Sequence record: NC_028999.1
Reading direction: 5' to 3' (one strand)
DNA: 64,000 bases
Below, in pieces: positions 12,886 through 27,092 of the stretch. The stretch's first letter is position 1, and each line of letters begins with the position of its first letter. The notes under the pieces were generated by a model that worked only from the letters and a program-made list of their open reading frames with translations, did no database searches and had not been told where the DNA came from. Both the position numbers and the translations under genes were made by a program.

Positions 12886-14709
12886 ATCCAGATCAGCCAC
12901 GTGCGTAAACAAAAGTGTGTTGTAGTCGGGTAAGTCTTTGACACACTTCAGTCCGTTGGGTCCAGCCATGTACGAAGGCAGGGTAACGATCCAGGAATCG
13001 TGGCCAACAACATAGCTATCAAGATCATGAACCATCTGATCAGAGCTTGAACCAATTACACAGGGTTCAGGCCGCTTGAGATACCAGAAGTGCATGTCGT
13101 CGCACAGACGTTTCGGGTTAGAACTAAAGTTCTTGTAGTCCGAAGATTTCGAGAACAGAGTAATAGACGAAGCCAGGTCATTAATCTTTTCATCGAGTTG
13201 TTCCAGTCGAATGGAGTCGATGATGTTGTAAAGACCGTACCGGACTTTGTGGTTCTTCTGCATCTCAATGTGCCATTCGATACCTCCCAAGTAGTCAGTT
13301 TCAGCGAACTTCAGTTTACCAAAGTTCAGGCGCATCCCCACACCAAACCCAGGATGTACGTTGACACCCCAGACCAGCGAATCAACTTCTTCCCAGTGTT
13401 CTTCTCGTTCGACCTTTTCCTCACGGCGGTACTCGACTTGAACCCTCGGATCTTCCGGATCAATACCTTCTTGTAGCAGCTTCTCCTGAGCTGCGGTATA
13501 AACAGGGACATCGTTGTACGTGACGTCTACCTTATCCTTGCTCGGATCGTTGACCGACCAATATGGGTGGGCACCACTACGTTCAGCGATGGCTTTACCC
13601 ATCTTCTTCATCCAGCTGTTGAATTCCTCTTCAGTCTGAACAGTTTCCTGTTCATCCATGGAGAGTTCTTTCTTCAGGATGGCATCGAGGGCATAACTGG
13701 ATTCTTTACCTTTGGCCAATCGAGTTACACGATACGTGGCCATGGAGTCAATGCACTGGAACGACGCAGGTGCAGTAATCCAATGCCATTGGTCTTCTGG
13801 ACCTTTGGACTTGGTTACACCCGATGCCGTAGTGGTCATCGCTTGGTCTTGACGGTAATGGAAATACCGATAGTTCGGAGGAACTTGAGGATCACTGAAT
13901 ACGTTCTTCGGGTCAATGCCGTAGTTTTCCAGTGTGGTCAAGATTCGACTCATGTCGAAGTCGATATTCCAGAACGCGAAGAAGTCAGGCTTCCACTTGT
14001 GCAAACGACGCATGCAGTTGATGATGATATCAGCAGGCGAATTTACTACCTCAATTTCAATATTGAGATTACGTGCTTTTTTCAGAGTCACCAATTCTGG
14101 AATGCGTTCTAATTCGGCGAAGGTTTCGGCAACTGGGTCATCCAGATCTTTCACCCAATGCTTCAGATATGCCAGATACACGTTTTCCTTGTGTGTAACC
14201 GACATGCAGATAATCTGTCCCTCGTTCTCTTCTTCGTACACGTTGGTCTCGATGTCGCCACCGGCTACCGTGTTACGGGAAATAAGTTCCGGGTATTGCT
14301 CCCGGTAGTCGTTTTTGAGACAGCAGACTGAGCTTACGTCCGAACCGTACAGATAAGGGCTACGGCTCAATTGGCGCATACGTGGGTTAGGACCCATTGA
14401 GTAATCGCCTAACAACTTAGCGATCATACGTGGCATCTCCAGTTGAGTACAGGTGTACTTCTGGAGGTTACGTTCAAATTCGTAATCTTTCTTTTCTTTA
14501 TGATTTTGTCTTCCCTTCTGTGTAATCCAGAAGGGACGTTTGTAGTCTTCAACGACCCGAATACGTGGGATACGACGTTTGTCTTTAAGGTGAATGATTT
14601 CTTTGACTACGTGTGCATCATGCCTACGGCCAGTTTGGTCAGTCACATAAGTGATGTGTTTGGCTTCAATACCAACAACATCTTCTTTTGTAAATTGTAG
14701 GTCGGACAT
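12886..14709 (-). CDS. polB: split family-B DNA polymerase, 3'-5' exonuclease part (phiKZ gp82-like), exon 1
   Basis: ExoI DIET, ExoII WNIDFD, ExoIII YNIIDS; ends HVADLD at the intron; spliced product about 686 aa. Confidence 0.88.
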
Positions 14710-14821
14710 CGAAAACAGCCCCTTTGTTTCGATTTAAAAACACGTATTATGGTGAAGCTAAGTATAAGCTCCCAATCCCAATCTTTATGATTACAATACC
14801 CACATGTCAAGGATGTTCTAG

Positions 14822-16066
14822 ATGAACATGAAACCCACTCTTTCCATGGAAATGCTTGCCATGGGAGCGAAGTCCAAGATCGGTGAGATCACTGAGGACT
14901 TCATTATTAAAGTCCGTGAGAAAGAACGCCTCGGTGTCCGTGTCGACGTCGATACGTTGAAGAAATACTGTGAGGACTTGAAGGCTGAAACTGGGATCAC
15001 TTATAGTTTCAAGCTTATCCTTTCGGATATCCCTGATGCAGGCGTGTACCACAAGGTTATCTTCATGGGTCACGCGGGTACTTGGTACTACACTGACCCC
15101 ATCAACAAAGTCACTGCTACTAGCAAGACTGCCATCGACATGGTCACTGAAATCGACCTGAAAAATGTCAAGGTTAAAGGTGGTGCCGCAGATGATTTGA
15201 TCTTCGAGTTCAACGTCTCCATGGGTATCTTGGGTGAGAAGCTAGGTTTCACTGTGCGTGAAGCTGCCGCTGTCATGATTCACGAAATTGGCCACACGTT
15301 TAACACGTTCATGTACATGGGTGACTACGTTTGGTTGAACTATTACCTGACTGATGGGATCGAGATCCTGCAAGGTAAGAAGGTCAACAAATACAAGTTA
15401 CAGATTCTGGATGAAACCTGGCTACTGGAAAATATTCCTGAAGCCATGCGTGAAGAATTCGTGAACGGTCGCAACGACGACGCCACTGTCCGTAAAGCTA
15501 TTCTATCTGCTTGGAAGAAAGCACCCCGTCACCATCTGACCAACAACCCCACCACGGCTATGCGTCGTGAAGAACAAATGGCTGATATGTTTGCCAGTCG
15601 TCTGGGTTATGGCCGTGATCTGGTTACAGGCCTGCACAAGATGGACAGGTTCTTCGGTGTTACTGGTACCAACTTCTGGCTGGGTCAGACCATCTCCCTG
15701 CTGTTTATGATTACATTTGCTCCACTCACTGCTTTGGCAATCTTGTACGCTGATTCTCCCGATGAGTACAACTTCGCTGCCCGTTACGACAACCCGCTCG
15801 AACGGTTTACCAAGATGCGCCGGGATATCATCGCACAAATGAAACGTGGCGCTTATCCGAAAGCGGAAGTTGAGCGTGATGTTAAAGCGATTGACGAATG
15901 TCTTAAAGACTATTCAAAGAACCGTAGTGTTTTCACAGCTCTGTTAGAATTCTTCCGTCCCCAATTGCGTCGTGAAGCTCAGTATACTCGACATGAGGAA
16001 AACTTAGAAGCTCTCGCGAACAATGATCTGTTCCTTCAAGCCTTCCGCCTCCAATCTAAGGTATAA
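14822..16066 (+). CDS. virion protein with M48-like zinc metallopeptidase motifs
   Basis: HEIGH, EEQMADMFA, RYDNPLERF; hydrophobic segment FWLGQTISLLFMITFAPLTALAILY. Confidence 0.7.
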   Translation: MNMKPTLSMEMLAMGAKSKIGEITEDFIIKVREKERLGVRVDVDTLKKYCEDLKAETGITYSFKLILSDIPDAGVYHKVIFMGHAGTWYYTDPINKVTATSKTAIDMVTEIDLKNVKVKGGAADDLIFEFNVSMGILGEKLGFTVREAAAVMIHEIGHTFNTFMYMGDYVWLNYYLTDGIEILQGKKVNKYKLQILDETWLLENIPEAMREEFVNGRNDDATVRKAILSAWKKAPRHHLTNNPTTAMRREEQMADMFASRLGYGRDLVTGLHKMDRFFGVTGTNFWLGQTISLLFMITFAPLTALAILYADSPDEYNFAARYDNPLERFTKMRRDIIAQMKRGAYPKAEVERDVKAIDECLKDYSKNRSVFTALLEFFRPQLRREAQYTRHEENLEALANNDLFLQAFRLQSKV

Positions 16067-16070
16067 TACC

Positions 16071-16514
16071 ATGCGTCTTGGTTACGAAATCTCCCGACAT
16101 ATCAAAGAACTGAAGTCCCCGACCAACAACGAACGTCAATTGCGCGCTATGATGCTGGCTAATGCCATTGCATTTTACGTGCCGTTTGATCCAAGTCTGT
16201 CTGTAGAACAATTGATCGATACTCACCTACCGACTCTTCGTAAGGTGGTAGGTCAAGTTAACGAAAATATTACCGTGGATTCCAAGCTTGCTCAAGAACT
16301 CTTCAAGCAAGCCATCCGTATCCGCTTCGCTCTGCTTCACGGCGCCGCAGATCCAGCTGTCATCCTAATGGCCATGAAATCCGAAACTGCTGACAGTTTC
16401 CAGACTCCCGATGAAACAGCTGCTGCTGCACTACTGACTTCACGCCTGGACTTTGTTCGCGCACAAAATGGAATCGCTGAAGCTCTGCGTAATCTGGAGA
16501 CTGACGCTCAGTAA
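16071..16514 (+). CDS. hypothetical, probably virion protein
   Basis: Start MRLGYEISR; lies in the structural operon. Confidence 0.75.
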   Translation: MRLGYEISRHIKELKSPTNNERQLRAMMLANAIAFYVPFDPSLSVEQLIDTHLPTLRKVVGQVNENITVDSKLAQELFKQAIRIRFALLHGAADPAVILMAMKSETADSFQTPDETAAAALLTSRLDFVRAQNGIAEALRNLETDAQ

Positions 16515-16529
16515 TACGAGGATGGTTGT

Positions 16530-16841
16530 ATGACCAACCAAACCGAACGGATAGAATTGATCTATCCGCGTATCACAAAGTCTTACGCTAGATCTTTAAT
16601 CATCGAAGAGAAAATTATCTCCGATGAGGATATGTTAGTTACAGTTTGCATCGTTAAACTCAAGAATGGACATCGGATTGTAACCGATGCCATTGTGGCT
16701 AATAAAGCAGCGTTTGATTCGAAGCGTGGTGTGATTGTAGCTAGACGCAAAGCGATCGAGGAGATTATTCGTCTTGAACTATATTTACTACGCCAGAAAA
16801 AATATGAGCGTTCATTAGAAGGTGATACTGATGCAAACTGA
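16530..16841 (+). CDS. Gp49-family / Tad1-like protein
   Basis: VTVCIVKLKNGHRIV...FDSKRG..ARRKA..LELYLLRQKKY matches the N4 Gp49/Sf6 gp66 pattern. Confidence 0.7.
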   Translation: MTNQTERIELIYPRITKSYARSLIIEEKIISDEDMLVTVCIVKLKNGHRIVTDAIVANKAAFDSKRGVIVARRKAIEEIIRLELYLLRQKKYERSLEGDTDAN

Positions 16842-18072
16842 AGAAGAAATCCTTGAGTCTAAGTCGCATGTATTGGACGAAGCTTTGGATGAAGCGGTAA
16901 TCCCGCCGCAAGATATTAAAGTTGACGAAGAAGTGGCACGTCAACTACAAGTCGCCACAGAGCAGATTGGTGTTCTGACCGATCTGTATCACACCATCAA
17001 TGAAGAGGGTGTTTCTCAAGCTGACATCGATGCTCTTAAAGGTGTACGATCTAGTCTTGAGCAACATAATCTTCCATTACCGGCCATTGGTTTGGAAAAC
17101 TACGATGGTTTGTTTACGCCGATGCGGACTTCGGTTAACCTGAAAGTTTCTAACGAATCTATCCTGAAATCCATCACGGATACAATCAAGGAATGGTTCT
17201 ACAAACTGATTGATTGGGTAGCAAAAGTTCTGCAATGGTTCAAAGCACGGAAGTATTCCGATACGCAGATCATGCAGAAGGTCGATAAAGCACAATCCAA
17301 GCTTGATCTGGCCCGTGGATTGTTTGTGGGGATTGTTGCAGCCAACACACTCTCTACCCGTGATCTCCAACCGCAGTACGATGCACTGGCAGGAGAACTG
17401 CTGACTAATGTGCAACTACCGAAGAACGCCATGACATTGGTAGCTTTCGGTAATGGTGAGTACTCCATGGAACTTCGTCGGAAACTGGACAAAGCACAGG
17501 ATCTGTCAAAGAACCTGCTAACCGAGGTCAGTGAACTGCGAGATTTCGTACTGGGGAAATCGCAAGATCTAAACTTCTCCACAGGAACGGGTGATCAACT
17601 GGTTGCTCTGGCTAAAGACATCGCGGACTTTAATACAGAATCAGATGACCCAAACTTCTTCCTCAAGGACAAGGATCTGGGTAACCGTTTCTATGAAAAC
17701 ATCCGGATGATCAAACAACGGCGCACATTCTCTATTGAATTCATCTATAGTACTTACGCTAAAGTTGCTGATGAACTACGTAAAGTGCGTCGCTTTGAAC
17801 TGAAAGATAGTCAGATTCCAGCAGAATATTTCCAAGCCGCTTTCGAGAGTATTCATAAAGCTCTCATTGCGCTGCGTGAAATCATTGATGCATACTACAG
17901 GCTTTCTATTACACAATGGAAAGCCACAGCAACATTCATCAACTTCTATCTGCGAGCTTACGAAATCACTCGTAAAGACCGGATGGATAACCTGGTAGAT
18001 GATGTTGCCCGTGTAACGATCGAGAAACTGAACAAAGGTGTTGATGAACTCAAAGCCTCGCTCGGTATCTGA
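16831..18072 (+). CDS. internal head protein with protease-cleaved propeptide
   Basis: Acidic N-terminus, GLE and SNE sites ([S/A/G]xE consensus), then SILKSITDTIKEWFYKLIDW. Confidence 0.7.
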   Translation: MQTEEEILESKSHVLDEALDEAVIPPQDIKVDEEVARQLQVATEQIGVLTDLYHTINEEGVSQADIDALKGVRSSLEQHNLPLPAIGLENYDGLFTPMRTSVNLKVSNESILKSITDTIKEWFYKLIDWVAKVLQWFKARKYSDTQIMQKVDKAQSKLDLARGLFVGIVAANTLSTRDLQPQYDALAGELLTNVQLPKNAMTLVAFGNGEYSMELRRKLDKAQDLSKNLLTEVSELRDFVLGKSQDLNFSTGTGDQLVALAKDIADFNTESDDPNFFLKDKDLGNRFYENIRMIKQRRTFSIEFIYSTYAKVADELRKVRRFELKDSQIPAEYFQAAFESIHKALIALREIIDAYYRLSITQWKATATFINFYLRAYEITRKDRMDNLVDDVARVTIEKLNKGVDELKASLGI

Positions 18073-18073
18073 C

Positions 18074-18113
18074 GACATATTGCCCGCCCCGAAAGGAGCG
18101 GGCTTTATGCTGT
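18074..18113. terminator. bidirectional terminator
   Basis: GCCCGCCCC-GAAA-GGAGCGGGC-TTTATGC between convergent genes. Confidence 0.75.
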
Positions 18114-21022
18114 TAACTCAATACCTCATGCTTGAGGAAGTTGAATTGGATGTCATCTTCCACAGTGAGTTCTTGGTTGGGGAGTACCACTAGTTTCTTA
18201 CGGATAGCTAGACGAACTGCATCATCTTCCACTGTAAGAATGCTGTAGTTAGCCGAACCACCAAGACCACTGAACTCGATTGCCATGACTTGATCCCCAG
18301 AGGTTTCTTCAAGCTTAGCCACAATATCCGATACCGATACAGTTTTGCGAACGATTAGGTCGTTAGTAATGATCTTACCGTTGCTGATATAGCTCGGACG
18401 AATTGCAGAGTTCTTGTACTCGGACGGTGTCAGGTACATAGTGATCGCAAAGGCTTGGTCCACTGGAATGGTTGCCTTTTGACCCTCACGTACTGTAACA
18501 ACCGTATCACCGTAAGTCGTAGTCGGATACAAGAACAACTCACACTTCTCCAGCAATTGCCGGTTCAGTAGATCAATGTCTGTTTGCAACCAACCCACGA
18601 ATTCCATAGGGATCTGAGAACGATAGTTGGAGGCAGCTTGTTCCGTTGCAAAGTAGAACAGCCCATCCACCATTAGCAGTGTGATTTCTCGCAACAGTTT
18701 ACGAGGTGCAACCAGAATGGGGTTACCGTCTTTATCAAGCTTGACATCCCCTTTCTGATGCTTCTTCACTTGGTTTCCTTGGGCATCCAGAACCGGGTCA
18801 CCTTTCTTGTGAAGAATCTCGTAATCATAACCACCACCCGGCAAAGGCGTGATGATAACGTTACCATTACTGTCAGTAGCGTACTCGTTTTCTTCGTAGA
18901 ACGCCATGACATCGTATTCCCAATGCTGATAAGACTCATCTCCCAACACCGTACGACTACGACGCCAGATGCTGGTCATGTCGTAACCCAGTACGGTTTG
19001 CAGTCGTTCACGAGTTACCACCATATACTGCTGAGGCAGCAGATGACTTTGTACTAGGTCATCGAGTTCATTTGGTTGATAACCGGGAGTGATGGTATTC
19101 ACCACTAGGATGGAAACATCGAGGTTGCAATTCAAGGGCGTATAGAACCGATTCTGCGTTACGTCGAACATGGAGAGGTTGGTCGTATGCAGATGATGTA
19201 GTGAATCAATATCGTAGTTCGTATTGATGTCGAAGTAATACACCCTTTCGTTATCTTCCTTACCCATGTAGATGCCATTGACCGAAGCCCAGCGTGATTC
19301 ATTTGGCGGTTGATAACCGATCTGCAAAACGACTTGATCATCGTTTAGCTGCTTGAACTGATCACCAGTTTCCAGTTTGACAGTAATGCGATAACCTGCA
19401 TCAGTGCGAACAATATTGAACGAGTCAATCGTTGCTTGTAGGTTAGCTGTATCGTTCTCACCCACGAAGACCTTTTGTGTGATCGTCGGGTTATCCAAGT
19501 AGTAAGGACGCATCTCAAAGTTATTCGAGCTAGCATCCAGTACGTTGTGGAACGGTGAGTACATATACCGCCCAGCATTAACTTCCCGTGCAATGGTTTC
19601 AGCATTGCTGTTAACCAAACGGTCAATCTCAGCATCAGCTACCGTGGTAACCATCCCATTATAGAACCGGAACAGCATCGACGGTTTGATCGTAATACGG
19701 CTGTCATTATCAGCAACGTGTTCGGAACCCGCCAGTGAATCCATATCCAGTTTTAACTGAGACATGGCAACGCCTGCGCCTGAGACGATATCCAAACCAG
19801 CCGGTACACCCAGTCGACGAGAAGCCAAAAATTGTCGATTGGTAATGTTATCGATGTTTGATACCAGATCGTAACCACGACGAGTCAGTGTGGATTCCAG
19901 CTGCACGTTCGTAATAGGGATTTGGTTGTCGCCAAGTGTATTATTGATGACTTGATCACGCAGAGTAATAAAGTCAATCGACGCTGCACCACCATCTACC
20001 TTCTGTCGACTCATCGACTGAATCAAACCGAACGTATTCAATGGAGCAACGTACGTGGGGTCGTCGTCAATTGAATTGAACGTGTGCTTAAACTGATCAA
20101 TTTTGTACGCGGCCAGATCTCGCTCCAATCGACCCTTGGTTGTGTAGATATCCACACGAATGTCGCCAGTGGCCATCGCCATGTTGGTATAGACCGTTGG
20201 AATACTCACAGAGAGTTTTCCTGGCAGAACTTTGAATACTACAGTCAGGTTCAGTGGGTCATACACCAGATCGCTGTGAGTTGTCCGTACCTCTTCCCAA
20301 ACATCATCTTGGTTACGACTGATGTAAGCCCGCGCGTAATAGAAATTATCGGTGTAGGTGTACGAGGTTTGGAACAGCGAACTGGGGTTGAGCGTATCCG
20401 TGAAAGTTGTGACTTTGAAGTTCTGTACCGGAATATACAACGACATGACTTTACGTCCGTCGATGATCACCATTTCCCAATCAACCACGTTGGTACTCAG
20501 CGTAGCCACTGGTGAGATCGAGTCCTGTACATATTCAGCTGCGACACCACCGTGTCGCATTACCCGCAGTTCGATCGGGTACTGCATGGTAAAGGTAAGG
20601 TCAGCTACTGTGAACTCAGTTAAACGAGGAATAACCAGTTTCTTCAGGCCCTGGTCTCCATACGGGATAGCCTTAGCTAGAACTTCATCGTAAGCCAACA
20701 GTAGTTGCCAAGTAGTCGATGATGGTTCTGAGAATCGACCCAGGTAATCGTCATCCGACATGTGTCGATAGAGTTCGTCATTGGTGATGGCTAACCGGGG
20801 ATAGAGCTGACGCATCAACCCTTCCGTTTCGTTGATCGCCATACAGGTCTCTTGTACACTGCATTCAGCTGCGTATACAAATGGCATAGTTGCATCAGGG
20901 ATATCAAACGCCGCAGTCCCATTTGGATTCAATTGTGAATCCATCTCCTGAAGGACCAGTTGCTGCATCAATGCTGGATTACGACGTACATTGTACAGCC
21001 GTTCTCTGAAAGAAGAAGTCAC
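18113..21022 (-). CDS. virion structural protein, putative baseplate wedge (phiKZ gp87-like)
   Basis: 969 aa; size, orientation and synteny match the phiKZ-like core gene. Confidence 0.7.
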   Translation of the reverse strand: MTSSFRERLYNVRRNPALMQQLVLQEMDSQLNPNGTAAFDIPDATMPFVYAAECSVQETCMAINETEGLMRQLYPRLAITNDELYRHMSDDDYLGRFSEPSSTTWQLLLAYDEVLAKAIPYGDQGLKKLVIPRLTEFTVADLTFTMQYPIELRVMRHGGVAAEYVQDSISPVATLSTNVVDWEMVIIDGRKVMSLYIPVQNFKVTTFTDTLNPSSLFQTSYTYTDNFYYARAYISRNQDDVWEEVRTTHSDLVYDPLNLTVVFKVLPGKLSVSIPTVYTNMAMATGDIRVDIYTTKGRLERDLAAYKIDQFKHTFNSIDDDPTYVAPLNTFGLIQSMSRQKVDGGAASIDFITLRDQVINNTLGDNQIPITNVQLESTLTRRGYDLVSNIDNITNRQFLASRRLGVPAGLDIVSGAGVAMSQLKLDMDSLAGSEHVADNDSRITIKPSMLFRFYNGMVTTVADAEIDRLVNSNAETIAREVNAGRYMYSPFHNVLDASSNNFEMRPYYLDNPTITQKVFVGENDTANLQATIDSFNIVRTDAGYRITVKLETGDQFKQLNDDQVVLQIGYQPPNESRWASVNGIYMGKEDNERVYYFDINTNYDIDSLHHLHTTNLSMFDVTQNRFYTPLNCNLDVSILVVNTITPGYQPNELDDLVQSHLLPQQYMVVTRERLQTVLGYDMTSIWRRSRTVLGDESYQHWEYDVMAFYEENEYATDSNGNVIITPLPGGGYDYEILHKKGDPVLDAQGNQVKKHQKGDVKLDKDGNPILVAPRKLLREITLLMVDGLFYFATEQAASNYRSQIPMEFVGWLQTDIDLLNRQLLEKCELFLYPTTTYGDTVVTVREGQKATIPVDQAFAITMYLTPSEYKNSAIRPSYISNGKIITNDLIVRKTVSVSDIVAKLEETSGDQVMAIEFSGLGGSANYSILTVEDDAVRLAIRKKLVVLPNQELTVEDDIQFNFLKHEVLS

Positions 21023-26126: not shown

Positions 26127-27092
26127 ATGATTCATAACCTCGCATTCCACTTGGGCAACGAAGATTTCGCCGATGCTCATGAACCCCTGTTTGATGGCAC
26201 TGGCGAACCGCCAAGCATCGAAACTCAAAAGAACGACCAAGACTCAGTAGGTACAGGGGAAACTGCCCCAGCTGCCGAAAGTCCGGATACCCCGGAACAG
26301 AAACCCCAGCCGGAAGAAACTGCTGAAGCTGAAACCCCAGAAGACTCGGGTGAAGCTGAATCGGTTAAAGCCTCGGAACTGGAGCACGAGAAAGTAGAAG
26401 ACGTTGAGGCCGAAGAGAAACCTCTGGACGAATCTACTACAGCTCTGGAAAACTATATGCCAAAAGCAGTGCAGTCGGCTATCCTTGGTTTCTCCAAGCG
26501 TGAACGCACTGTACTGGGTAGCCATGTCAAGCGTATCCATCGCCTGGCTGGTACAAAACGCTCTGCTGACGAATCCATCTCTCTGGAATCTCTGGCTGAA
26601 GCTGTAGTCATCGGTAAAGCTCGTCTGATCGACCTGCGGGTACAGAAGGCCCATCATCGCTTTGCTGTATCCAACGAAGCTGTTGCTTCGGTACAAGCTC
26701 TGACCACGACTAAAGATCTCCCCAAACACCCTAAGGAGAATCAAGTATTCCATGTGAATGGTGTTGACTGGGTATTCTCTAAAGGCCAATGGGTAACTCG
26801 CCAAGGCATCTACGGTTTTGAAGACATTGATCCGACCTACTCGGTTCCGAAGACTGAGGCAGATTGCGACAATGCTCCTTTGGCACATGACATGATCCAG
26901 GGCGGTGAATTCGCTGAACCCGTTGATCAAGTTGAAGTGATCCCGGCTCTGGAAGCCTACGACCGTCTGCTAACTAAATACAAGCCTGCCCTGACTGAGC
27001 GTGCTTGTGGCGTAGTGGTAGCAGGTATTGAGCGCGCTGCAAAACTCAGCGGTATGAAAAGCGGCACTGTGTCCGTTGAGGCGTACCGTTAA
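26127..27092 (+). CDS. acidic head-associated protein, propeptide-like along its whole length
   Basis: Many [S/A/G]xE sites; ends just after the family block ALEAYDRLL..VVVAGIERAA..SVEAYR. Confidence 0.65.
   Translation: MIHNLAFHLGNEDFADAHEPLFDGTGEPPSIETQKNDQDSVGTGETAPAAESPDTPEQKPQPEETAEAETPEDSGEAESVKASELEHEKVEDVEAEEKPLDESTTALENYMPKAVQSAILGFSKRERTVLGSHVKRIHRLAGTKRSADESISLESLAEAVVIGKARLIDLRVQKAHHRFAVSNEAVASVQALTTTKDLPKHPKENQVFHVNGVDWVFSKGQWVTRQGIYGFEDIDPTYSVPKTEADCDNAPLAHDMIQGGEFAEPVDQVEVIPALEAYDRLLTKYKPALTERACGVVVAGIERAAKLSGMKSGTVSVEAYR

Follow-up and report, generated by a model that had tools for sequence, protein, structure and literature searches.

The gp088 gene of Pseudomonas phage PhiPA3 encodes a member of the Acb4 (PF13876) family, and its product is most likely a free-standing Acb4 protein that, by analogy with characterized relatives, would act as a homo-oligomeric sponge for a CBASS-type cyclic nucleotide signal. 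This reading is favored here with some reserve; what was observed directly is the family to which gp088 belongs, its fold, its gene order, its occurrence among phages and its presence in RNA libraries. The Acb4 family, its mechanism and the membership of gp088, which belongs to a divergent jumbo-phage clade, are already public. Unless stated otherwise, positions refer to the window, the whole 64,000-nt stretch of DNA that was analyzed, which corresponds to record positions 62001-126000 of PhiPA3, NC_028999.1 (Table 1).

A small gene between two capsid vertex-protein genes

That the gene is inserted in a virion operon, as the original prediction held, is confirmed by its surroundings: gp088 lies between gp087 and gp089, and the phiKZ counterparts of these neighbors, gp085 and gp086, follow each other at a distance of 10 nt, without a gene of this kind between them. 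The spacing in PhiPA3 is tight, with 15 nt from the gp087 stop codon to the gp088 start and an 11-nt overlap of gp088 with gp089, whose ATG is inside the gp088 3' end. When the region 14500-18300 was scanned for promoters and terminators, no site rose above shuffled expectation, and the + strand of the gp086-gp089 block contained no internal terminator-like site. RNA libraries from two studies hold short assembled contigs that cover gp088 at 100% identity, extending over 16521-16841 in one run and over 16533-16611 and 16786-16997 in others. These contigs are compatible with transcription of the gene; they are assembled contigs only, for which DNA carry-over is possible.

Table 1. Positions of gp088, its parts and the other PhiPA3 genes discussed (window numbering, except for gp217)
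Feature	Position	Strand	Description
gp086	14822..16066	+	Head protein of the virion, orthologous to phiKZ gp084; opens the same-strand block
gp087	16071..16514	+	Capsid vertex-binding protein, PF25615 PhiKZ_gp85, E 2e-68; upstream of gp088
GAGGA motif	16518..16522	+	Shine-Dalgarno-like/ribosome-binding motif, read from sequence; 7 nt before the gp088 ATG, 3 nt past the gp087 stop codon
gp088 ORF	16530..16841	+	ATG to TGA, 103 aa; Acb4 family (PF13876); UniProt F8SJW7
PF13876 domain proper	16575..16799	+	Residues 16-90 of gp088
Predicted ligand-loop equivalent	16683..16730	+	Residues 52-67 of gp088; third strand and the loop leading into the long helix, compare SPO1 Acb4
S-L-E string	16812..16820	+	Residues 95-97 of gp088
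gp089	16831..18072	+	Capsid vertex-binding protein, PF25617 PhiKZ_gp86, E 1e-162; downstream of gp088
gp096	26127..27092	+	321-aa virion protein, annotated as similar to phiKZ gp184
gp217	PhiPA3 record 207848..208417, outside the window	+	Tad1 homologue; annotated 'hypothetical protein'

The first gene of the block carries a feature of its own, an HExxH motif at gp086 residues 154-158 that is kept in all seven orthologues examined, that of phiKZ included, and that suggests a zinc metallopeptidase-like site; gp086 has no match in Pfam.

Membership in the Acb4 family

Against Pfam, gp088 matched PF13876 (Phage_gp49_66) over profile positions 2-81 of 82 with an E-value of 1.7e-10 and a score of 41.7 bits, the cut-off being 27, and it also matched phrog_322 (E 1e-25). 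A six-frame search of the genome gave the same PF13876 match and identified gp088 as the sole PF13876 gene of PhiPA3; neither Tad2 (PF11195) nor Sequestin (PF21825) was found in this phage. The motif string beginning TVC.V.L.NG, from which membership in the Gp49 family had been proposed, is literally present at gp088 residues 38-92, and the profile matches bear the proposal out. On the same model SPO1 Acb4 scores 34.9 bits, while N4 gp49 and Sf6 gp66 reach about 120 bits and the range for the N4, Sf6 and RSL1 proteins is 89-120 bits. A clade profile made from nine jumbo-phage orthologues, when searched against PDB sequences at E-values up to 10, had 9E4W as its sole match (E 0.11), and the register of this match agreed with that of the MAFFT alignment.

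PF13876 is named for N4 gp49 and Sf6 gene 66, and its characterized members are Acb4 (anti-CBASS 4) proteins (Chang et al., bioRxiv 10.1101/2024.12.30.630793). Acb4 was discovered in Bacillus phage SPO1, and its structure with 3'3'-cGAMP (PDB 9E4W) is a tetramer shaped like a pinwheel, in which four pockets lie between subunits; SPO1 Acb4 rescued phage from CBASS, and 3'3'-cGAMP was bound by all eight of the purified homologues, which are diverse in sequence (Chang et al.). In the same work 1,331 PF13876 proteins were defined as Acb4 homologues, and Table S3 already lists gp088 (F8SJW7) as well as relatives from 201phi2-1, Phabio, Psa21, PA1C and Noxifer. In later work, N4 gp49 was found to bind c-di-AMP at 111 nM. 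The description of the Gp49 family as sponges for immune signals is upheld.

Predicted fold

An AlphaFold2 model of gp088, built from eight clade sequences (mean pLDDT 83.4), comprises a helix at residues 17-22, strands at 24-32, 37-44 and 49-55 and a long helix at 64-100, with disorder limited to residues 1-10 and the Acb4 fold spanning residues 13-92 of 103. The model matches the fold of the Acb4 protomer, which has three antiparallel strands, an N-terminal helical region and long C-terminal helices and is dsRBD-like. In a Foldseek search of the PDB the ten best matches were chains of 9E4W (TM 0.59-0.69, rmsd 1.7-2.7 A over about 70 residues), and the next match was far lower. VIA-align, which is independent of Foldseek, likewise ranked 9e4w_A first among 48,161 representatives (Z 8.4, rmsd 2.7 A, 75 residues). 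SPO1 Acb4 is thus the best solved match of the model in two independent structure searches. The central strand of the model, V37-L44, is hydrophobic on both faces, which would suit a sheet buried in a dimer.

The matches that follow 9e4w_A in VIA-align are release factors, ribosome hibernation factors and dsRBDs, and gp088 is basic, with a pI of 9.1 and 19 lysine and arginine residues. A protein with these properties might bind RNA or ribosomes through its dsRBD-like core, for example as a translation regulator of the head operon, and be no sponge at all. This is very improbable, however, since the release factors, hibernation factors and dsRBDs are also the structural neighbors of SPO1 Acb4, a proven sponge (Chang et al.), the Z scores of these matches to gp088 (5-7) are within the range that the tool calls common, and by sequence gp088 belongs to PF13876, which is no RNA-binding family.

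Separation from Tad1 and a true Tad1 homologue elsewhere in the genome

The original prediction had described gp088 as Tad1-like and had counted Tad1 within the Gp49 family, and on both points it has to be corrected. The PF13876 members are Acb4 proteins, which have no structural homology to Tad1, Tad2 or Acb2 (Chang et al.), and the Tad1 domain of phiKZ gp184 has no match in Pfam. No Tad1 chain was returned by PDB sequence searches with gp088 alone or with the clade profile at E-values up to 10, and no Tad1, Tad2 or Acb2 structure was among the matches listed by Foldseek and VIA-align for the gp088 model. An hhalign comparison of the gp088 clade with the Tad1 domain of phiKZ gp184 gave a probability of 0.2%, the aligned piece being a 17-residue string around Cys-x5-Asn-Gly and nothing else; as a positive control, the C-terminal domain of gp184 matched solved Tad1 (7UAV, 8KBB) at an E-value of about 3e-6. 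Membership of gp088 in the Tad1 family is excluded by these sequence searches, fold searches and the hhalign comparison. A (T/V)xC(I/V)xLxNG string is common to the Acb4 and Tad1 families and may be the source of the mix-up.

That gp088 could be a Tad1-family sponge for the Thoeris signal gcADPR is accordingly barely credible. Beyond the short shared string, the one point in its favor is that an Acb4-Sequestin fusion binds gcADPR, albeit via the Sequestin domain. Against it are the lack of sequence or fold similarity between gp088 and Tad1, the position of phiKZ Tad1 outside PF13876, and the presence in PhiPA3 of a true Tad1 homologue, gp217. The identity of gp217 to phiKZ gp184 in the Tad1 domain is 56% (E 1e-37), and at its N-terminus gp217 is extended by an acidic stretch of about 80 aa; its gene is syntenic with that of gp184, being flanked by orthologues of gp182 and gp186.

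A further gene in the window, gp096, is related to another part of gp184. Residues 181-236 of gp096 match residues 56-112 of gp184, which precede the Tad1 domain (E 6e-14 to the capsid structure 8Y6V), and the Tad1 domain itself is absent from gp096. Since gp096 shares only the pre-Tad1 part, the two fused parts of phiKZ gp184 find their best matches in separate PhiPA3 genes, gp096 and gp217.

The predicted ligand pocket

Residue numbering of SPO1 Acb4 and gp088 coincides over the core, which allows the ligand contacts to be compared directly. In SPO1 Acb4 the contacts are K36, F48, E49, V56, Y57, F62, N63, I66, T70, K81 and L89, of which K36, F48 and E49 read the guanine and V56, F62, N63 and I66 hold the adenine (Chang et al.). 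The comparison took in the ten alignable positions, L89 not being alignable, with N4 gp49, Sf6 gp66, the RSL1 homologue and SPO1 Acb4 as references. At these ten positions, in the order given, the residues of gp088 are L, H, R, V, A, F, D, R, V and R. Positions 56, 57, 62, 63, 70 and 81 are within the variation of N4, Sf6 and RSL1. The remaining four contacts go beyond the range of the references: K/R/H at 36 is replaced by L, the stacking F48 by H, E/T/S at 49 by R and I/L/Q at 66 by R (Arg/Lys). Loss of the G-x-S at 52-54 and of Trp80 also places gp088 outside the family range. The divergence of the usual ES/SAC and W positions, noticed in the original prediction, is real: in the alignment with N4 gp49, Sf6 gp66 and RSL1, G-E-S-A-C has become T-D-A-I-V and the Trp at position 80 is Ile. 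Of the adenine-side residues, V56 and F62 are kept and N63 is conservatively replaced by D; G67, A71 and Y85 of SPO1 are likewise kept or conservatively replaced. Because the changed positions 36, 48 and 49 are those that read guanine in SPO1, the predicted gp088 pocket has its adenine side largely kept and its guanine side rebuilt.

The clade splits into two subclades, and in each of them the ligand loop varies least. In the PhiPA3-type subclade (26 sequences) the loop reads T-D-A-I-V-A-N, R49 is invariant and position 36 is L, C or S; A54-I55-V56-A57-N58, F62 and G67 show little or no variation. In the Psa21-type subclade (18 sequences, including RVTF4) the loop is of the more canonical E-S-A-x-C kind, T-E-S-A-T-C-G, and position 36 is R. 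The contact positions as a set are not more conserved than other positions within the clade (permutation p 0.16 and 0.55).

These features raise the question of whether the Acb4 fold and sponge mechanism have been kept and the specificity switched. In that case the pocket, lined by L36, H48, R49 and R66, would take up some signal different from 3'3'-cGAMP; the cyclic trinucleotide that type III-C CBASS of P. aeruginosa makes is one example, and signals built on adenine alone or derived from ADPR are others. Such a switch would be in keeping with the concentration of changes on the SPO1 guanine side, with the distinct invariant loops of the two subclades and with the varying ligand range within the Acb4 family. 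Of the 13 group-specific positions, four are at contacts, but this enrichment is not significant (p 0.07), and every one of the eight Acb4 members tested bound 3'3'-cGAMP despite their diversity. A switched specificity is considered unlikely.

Distribution and history

A search of a large protein database with the clade profile retrieved 45 jumbo-phage clade members, all of about 100 aa and many on contigs of about 300 kb; it retrieved no canonical PF13876 members and nothing between E 1e-24 and the threshold. A single-protein search with gp088 returned four proteins, and a single-protein search for the gp088 locus in viral contigs gave no matches. In 201phi2-1, Phabio, Psa21, RVTF4 and Viktualia the gene order is gp84-like, gp85-like, Acb4-like, gp86-like, with the DNA polymerase gene ahead on the opposite strand. 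In at least five genera of jumbo phages the Acb4-like gene has this slot between the gp85-like and gp86-like genes, and adjoining genes either overlap or are 0-15 nt apart. No PF13876 match was found in phiKZ at E-values up to 10, and EL, OBP and SPN3US have no gene of this family.

Identity to orthologues is 37-51% for gp088, 40-49% for gp086 and gp087 and 27-30% for gp089, so that gp088 diverges about as slowly as its structural neighbors. In the simplest history suggested by these comparisons, the gene was inserted once, between the two vertex-protein genes, in the ancestor of the lineage from PhiPA3 to Psa21. This ancestor would be that of PhiPA3, 201phi2-1, Phabio, Psa21 and RVTF4; the gene has probably been inherited vertically since. 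It probably shares a transcript with the head genes, to which its translation is probably coupled. The context counts against the sponge reading, being atypical for an anti-defence gene, with a fixed capsid-operon slot across genera and evolution no faster than that of the neighbors.

A possible capsid role or packaging

The fixed slot in at least five genera and the neighbor-like rate of divergence would also be expected of a protein domesticated for a capsid role, either as an assembly factor or partner of gp087 and gp089 or as packaged and injected cargo. Cargo of this kind has a precedent in phiKZ gp184/Tad1, a packaged sponge whose N-terminus wedges it into the capsid; it is cut by the head protease and injected. 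A capsid role is nevertheless improbable, as phiKZ, EL, OBP and SPN3US make the same kind of capsid with no PF13876 gene.

For packaging in particular, which had been raised on account of the position among head genes, no support emerged. The GenBank notes of 201phi2-1 state that gp145, gp146, gp148 and gp149 were seen in virions by mass spectrometry, whereas the gp088 orthologue, gp147, has no such note. The pattern is the same in PhiPA3, where gp088 alone is named 'hypothetical protein' amid neighbors annotated 'virion structural'. With residues 13-92 of 103 taken up by the Acb4 fold, gp088 has no anchor or propeptide domain. The S-L-E string at residues 95-97 fits S/A/G-x-E, the head-protease site of phiKZ-like phages; however, it is a single site near the C-terminus that orthologues do not conserve, and chance alone would be expected to give one site of this kind. 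Mass spectrometry could have missed a small protein of low copy number, and packaging of gp088 in the virion is for this reason kept at a slight probability, at best that of a capsid role in general.

Proposed mode of action

On the preferred reading, gp088 would form a homo-oligomer, which in the solved SPO1 Acb4 is a tetramer. The pockets between the gp088 subunits would sequester the cyclic nucleotide alarm signal of a CBASS-type host defence, such that the defence effector would never be switched on. Oligomer formation, ligand binding, the anti-defence effect and the timing of expression of gp088 are what we infer from its relatives and its context. CBASS can restrict nucleus-forming phages of the phiKZ kind and acts from the cytoplasm or on the host, and because such defences act from the cytoplasm the phage nucleus would be no shield against them, as the original prediction supposed.

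If gp088 is transcribed with the head genes, the sponge would be present only after these turn on. Huiting et al. (2023, in Cell) reportedly observed that phages escape P. aeruginosa CBASS via capsid mutations, and in that light a sponge made alongside capsid genes would be not unreasonable. A more specific scenario can be framed, in which a vertically inherited Acb4 subfamily in the vertex-protein operon captures a signal other than 3'3'-cGAMP and has its production timed to the structural proteins that trigger CBASS. This scenario is doubtful, at about the level of the specificity switch that it includes; if true, the timed Acb4 would be a second anti-signaling device, mechanistically distinct, beside the injected Tad1.

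Comparison with known systems

The orthologues of gp088 in 201phi2-1 (gp147), Phabio, Viktualia, phages of the PA1C/PS119XW type, Psa21 and RVTF4 occupy the same slot, are about 100 aa long and are 37-79% identical; those of Psa21 and RVTF4 differ from gp088 in the basic residue at position 36 and the more canonical loop.

SPO1 Acb4 (9E4W), from a phage of Gram-positive hosts, resembles gp088 in its PF13876 domain, its length (96 versus 103 aa) and its alpha-beta-beta-beta-helix fold, and the two have C40, N46, V56, F62, G67, A71 and Y85 in common in the same register. Their identity is nonetheless only about 19%, the C-terminal helix of gp088 is longer and continuous, and SPO1 Acb4 rejects c-di-AMP.

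N4 gp49, Sf6 gp66 and the Acb4-Sequestin fusion of Ab09, a Pseudomonas N4-like phage, come like gp088 from phages of Gram-negative hosts. The Acb4 domain of the Ab09 fusion is tetrameric and, in P. aeruginosa, counteracts type II-A CBASS. N4 gp49 and Sf6 gp66 are far closer to the PF13876 model than gp088 (42 bits in round figures), and proteins of their type keep F48, a basic residue or His at 36, G-x-S-A-C and Trp80; none of these is retained in gp088. In N4-like phages Acb4 is found in variable anti-defence hot spots, in contrast to the capsid operon that houses gp088. The PF13876 protein of the Ralstonia jumbo phage RSL1 has another architecture, its 234 aa consisting of a canonical Acb4 domain followed by a C-terminal extension of about 125 aa.

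PhiKZ gp184/Tad1 is a sponge for an immune signal, carried by a Pseudomonas jumbo phage that forms a nucleus, and shows that such phages invest in sponges, but it belongs to a family and fold unrelated to those of gp088. PhiKZ Tad1 is anchored to the capsid by its N-terminus, travels in the virion and is injected, whereas gp088 is without such an extension and is not reported in virions. A 2026 review describes Tad1 as the only anti-defence protein known in jumbo phages. The Acb4-family protein of PhiPA3 and its relatives is a second candidate sponge, one that phiKZ does not have, and its presence could help to explain the differing CBASS sensitivity of the nucleus-forming phages that are studied for therapy.
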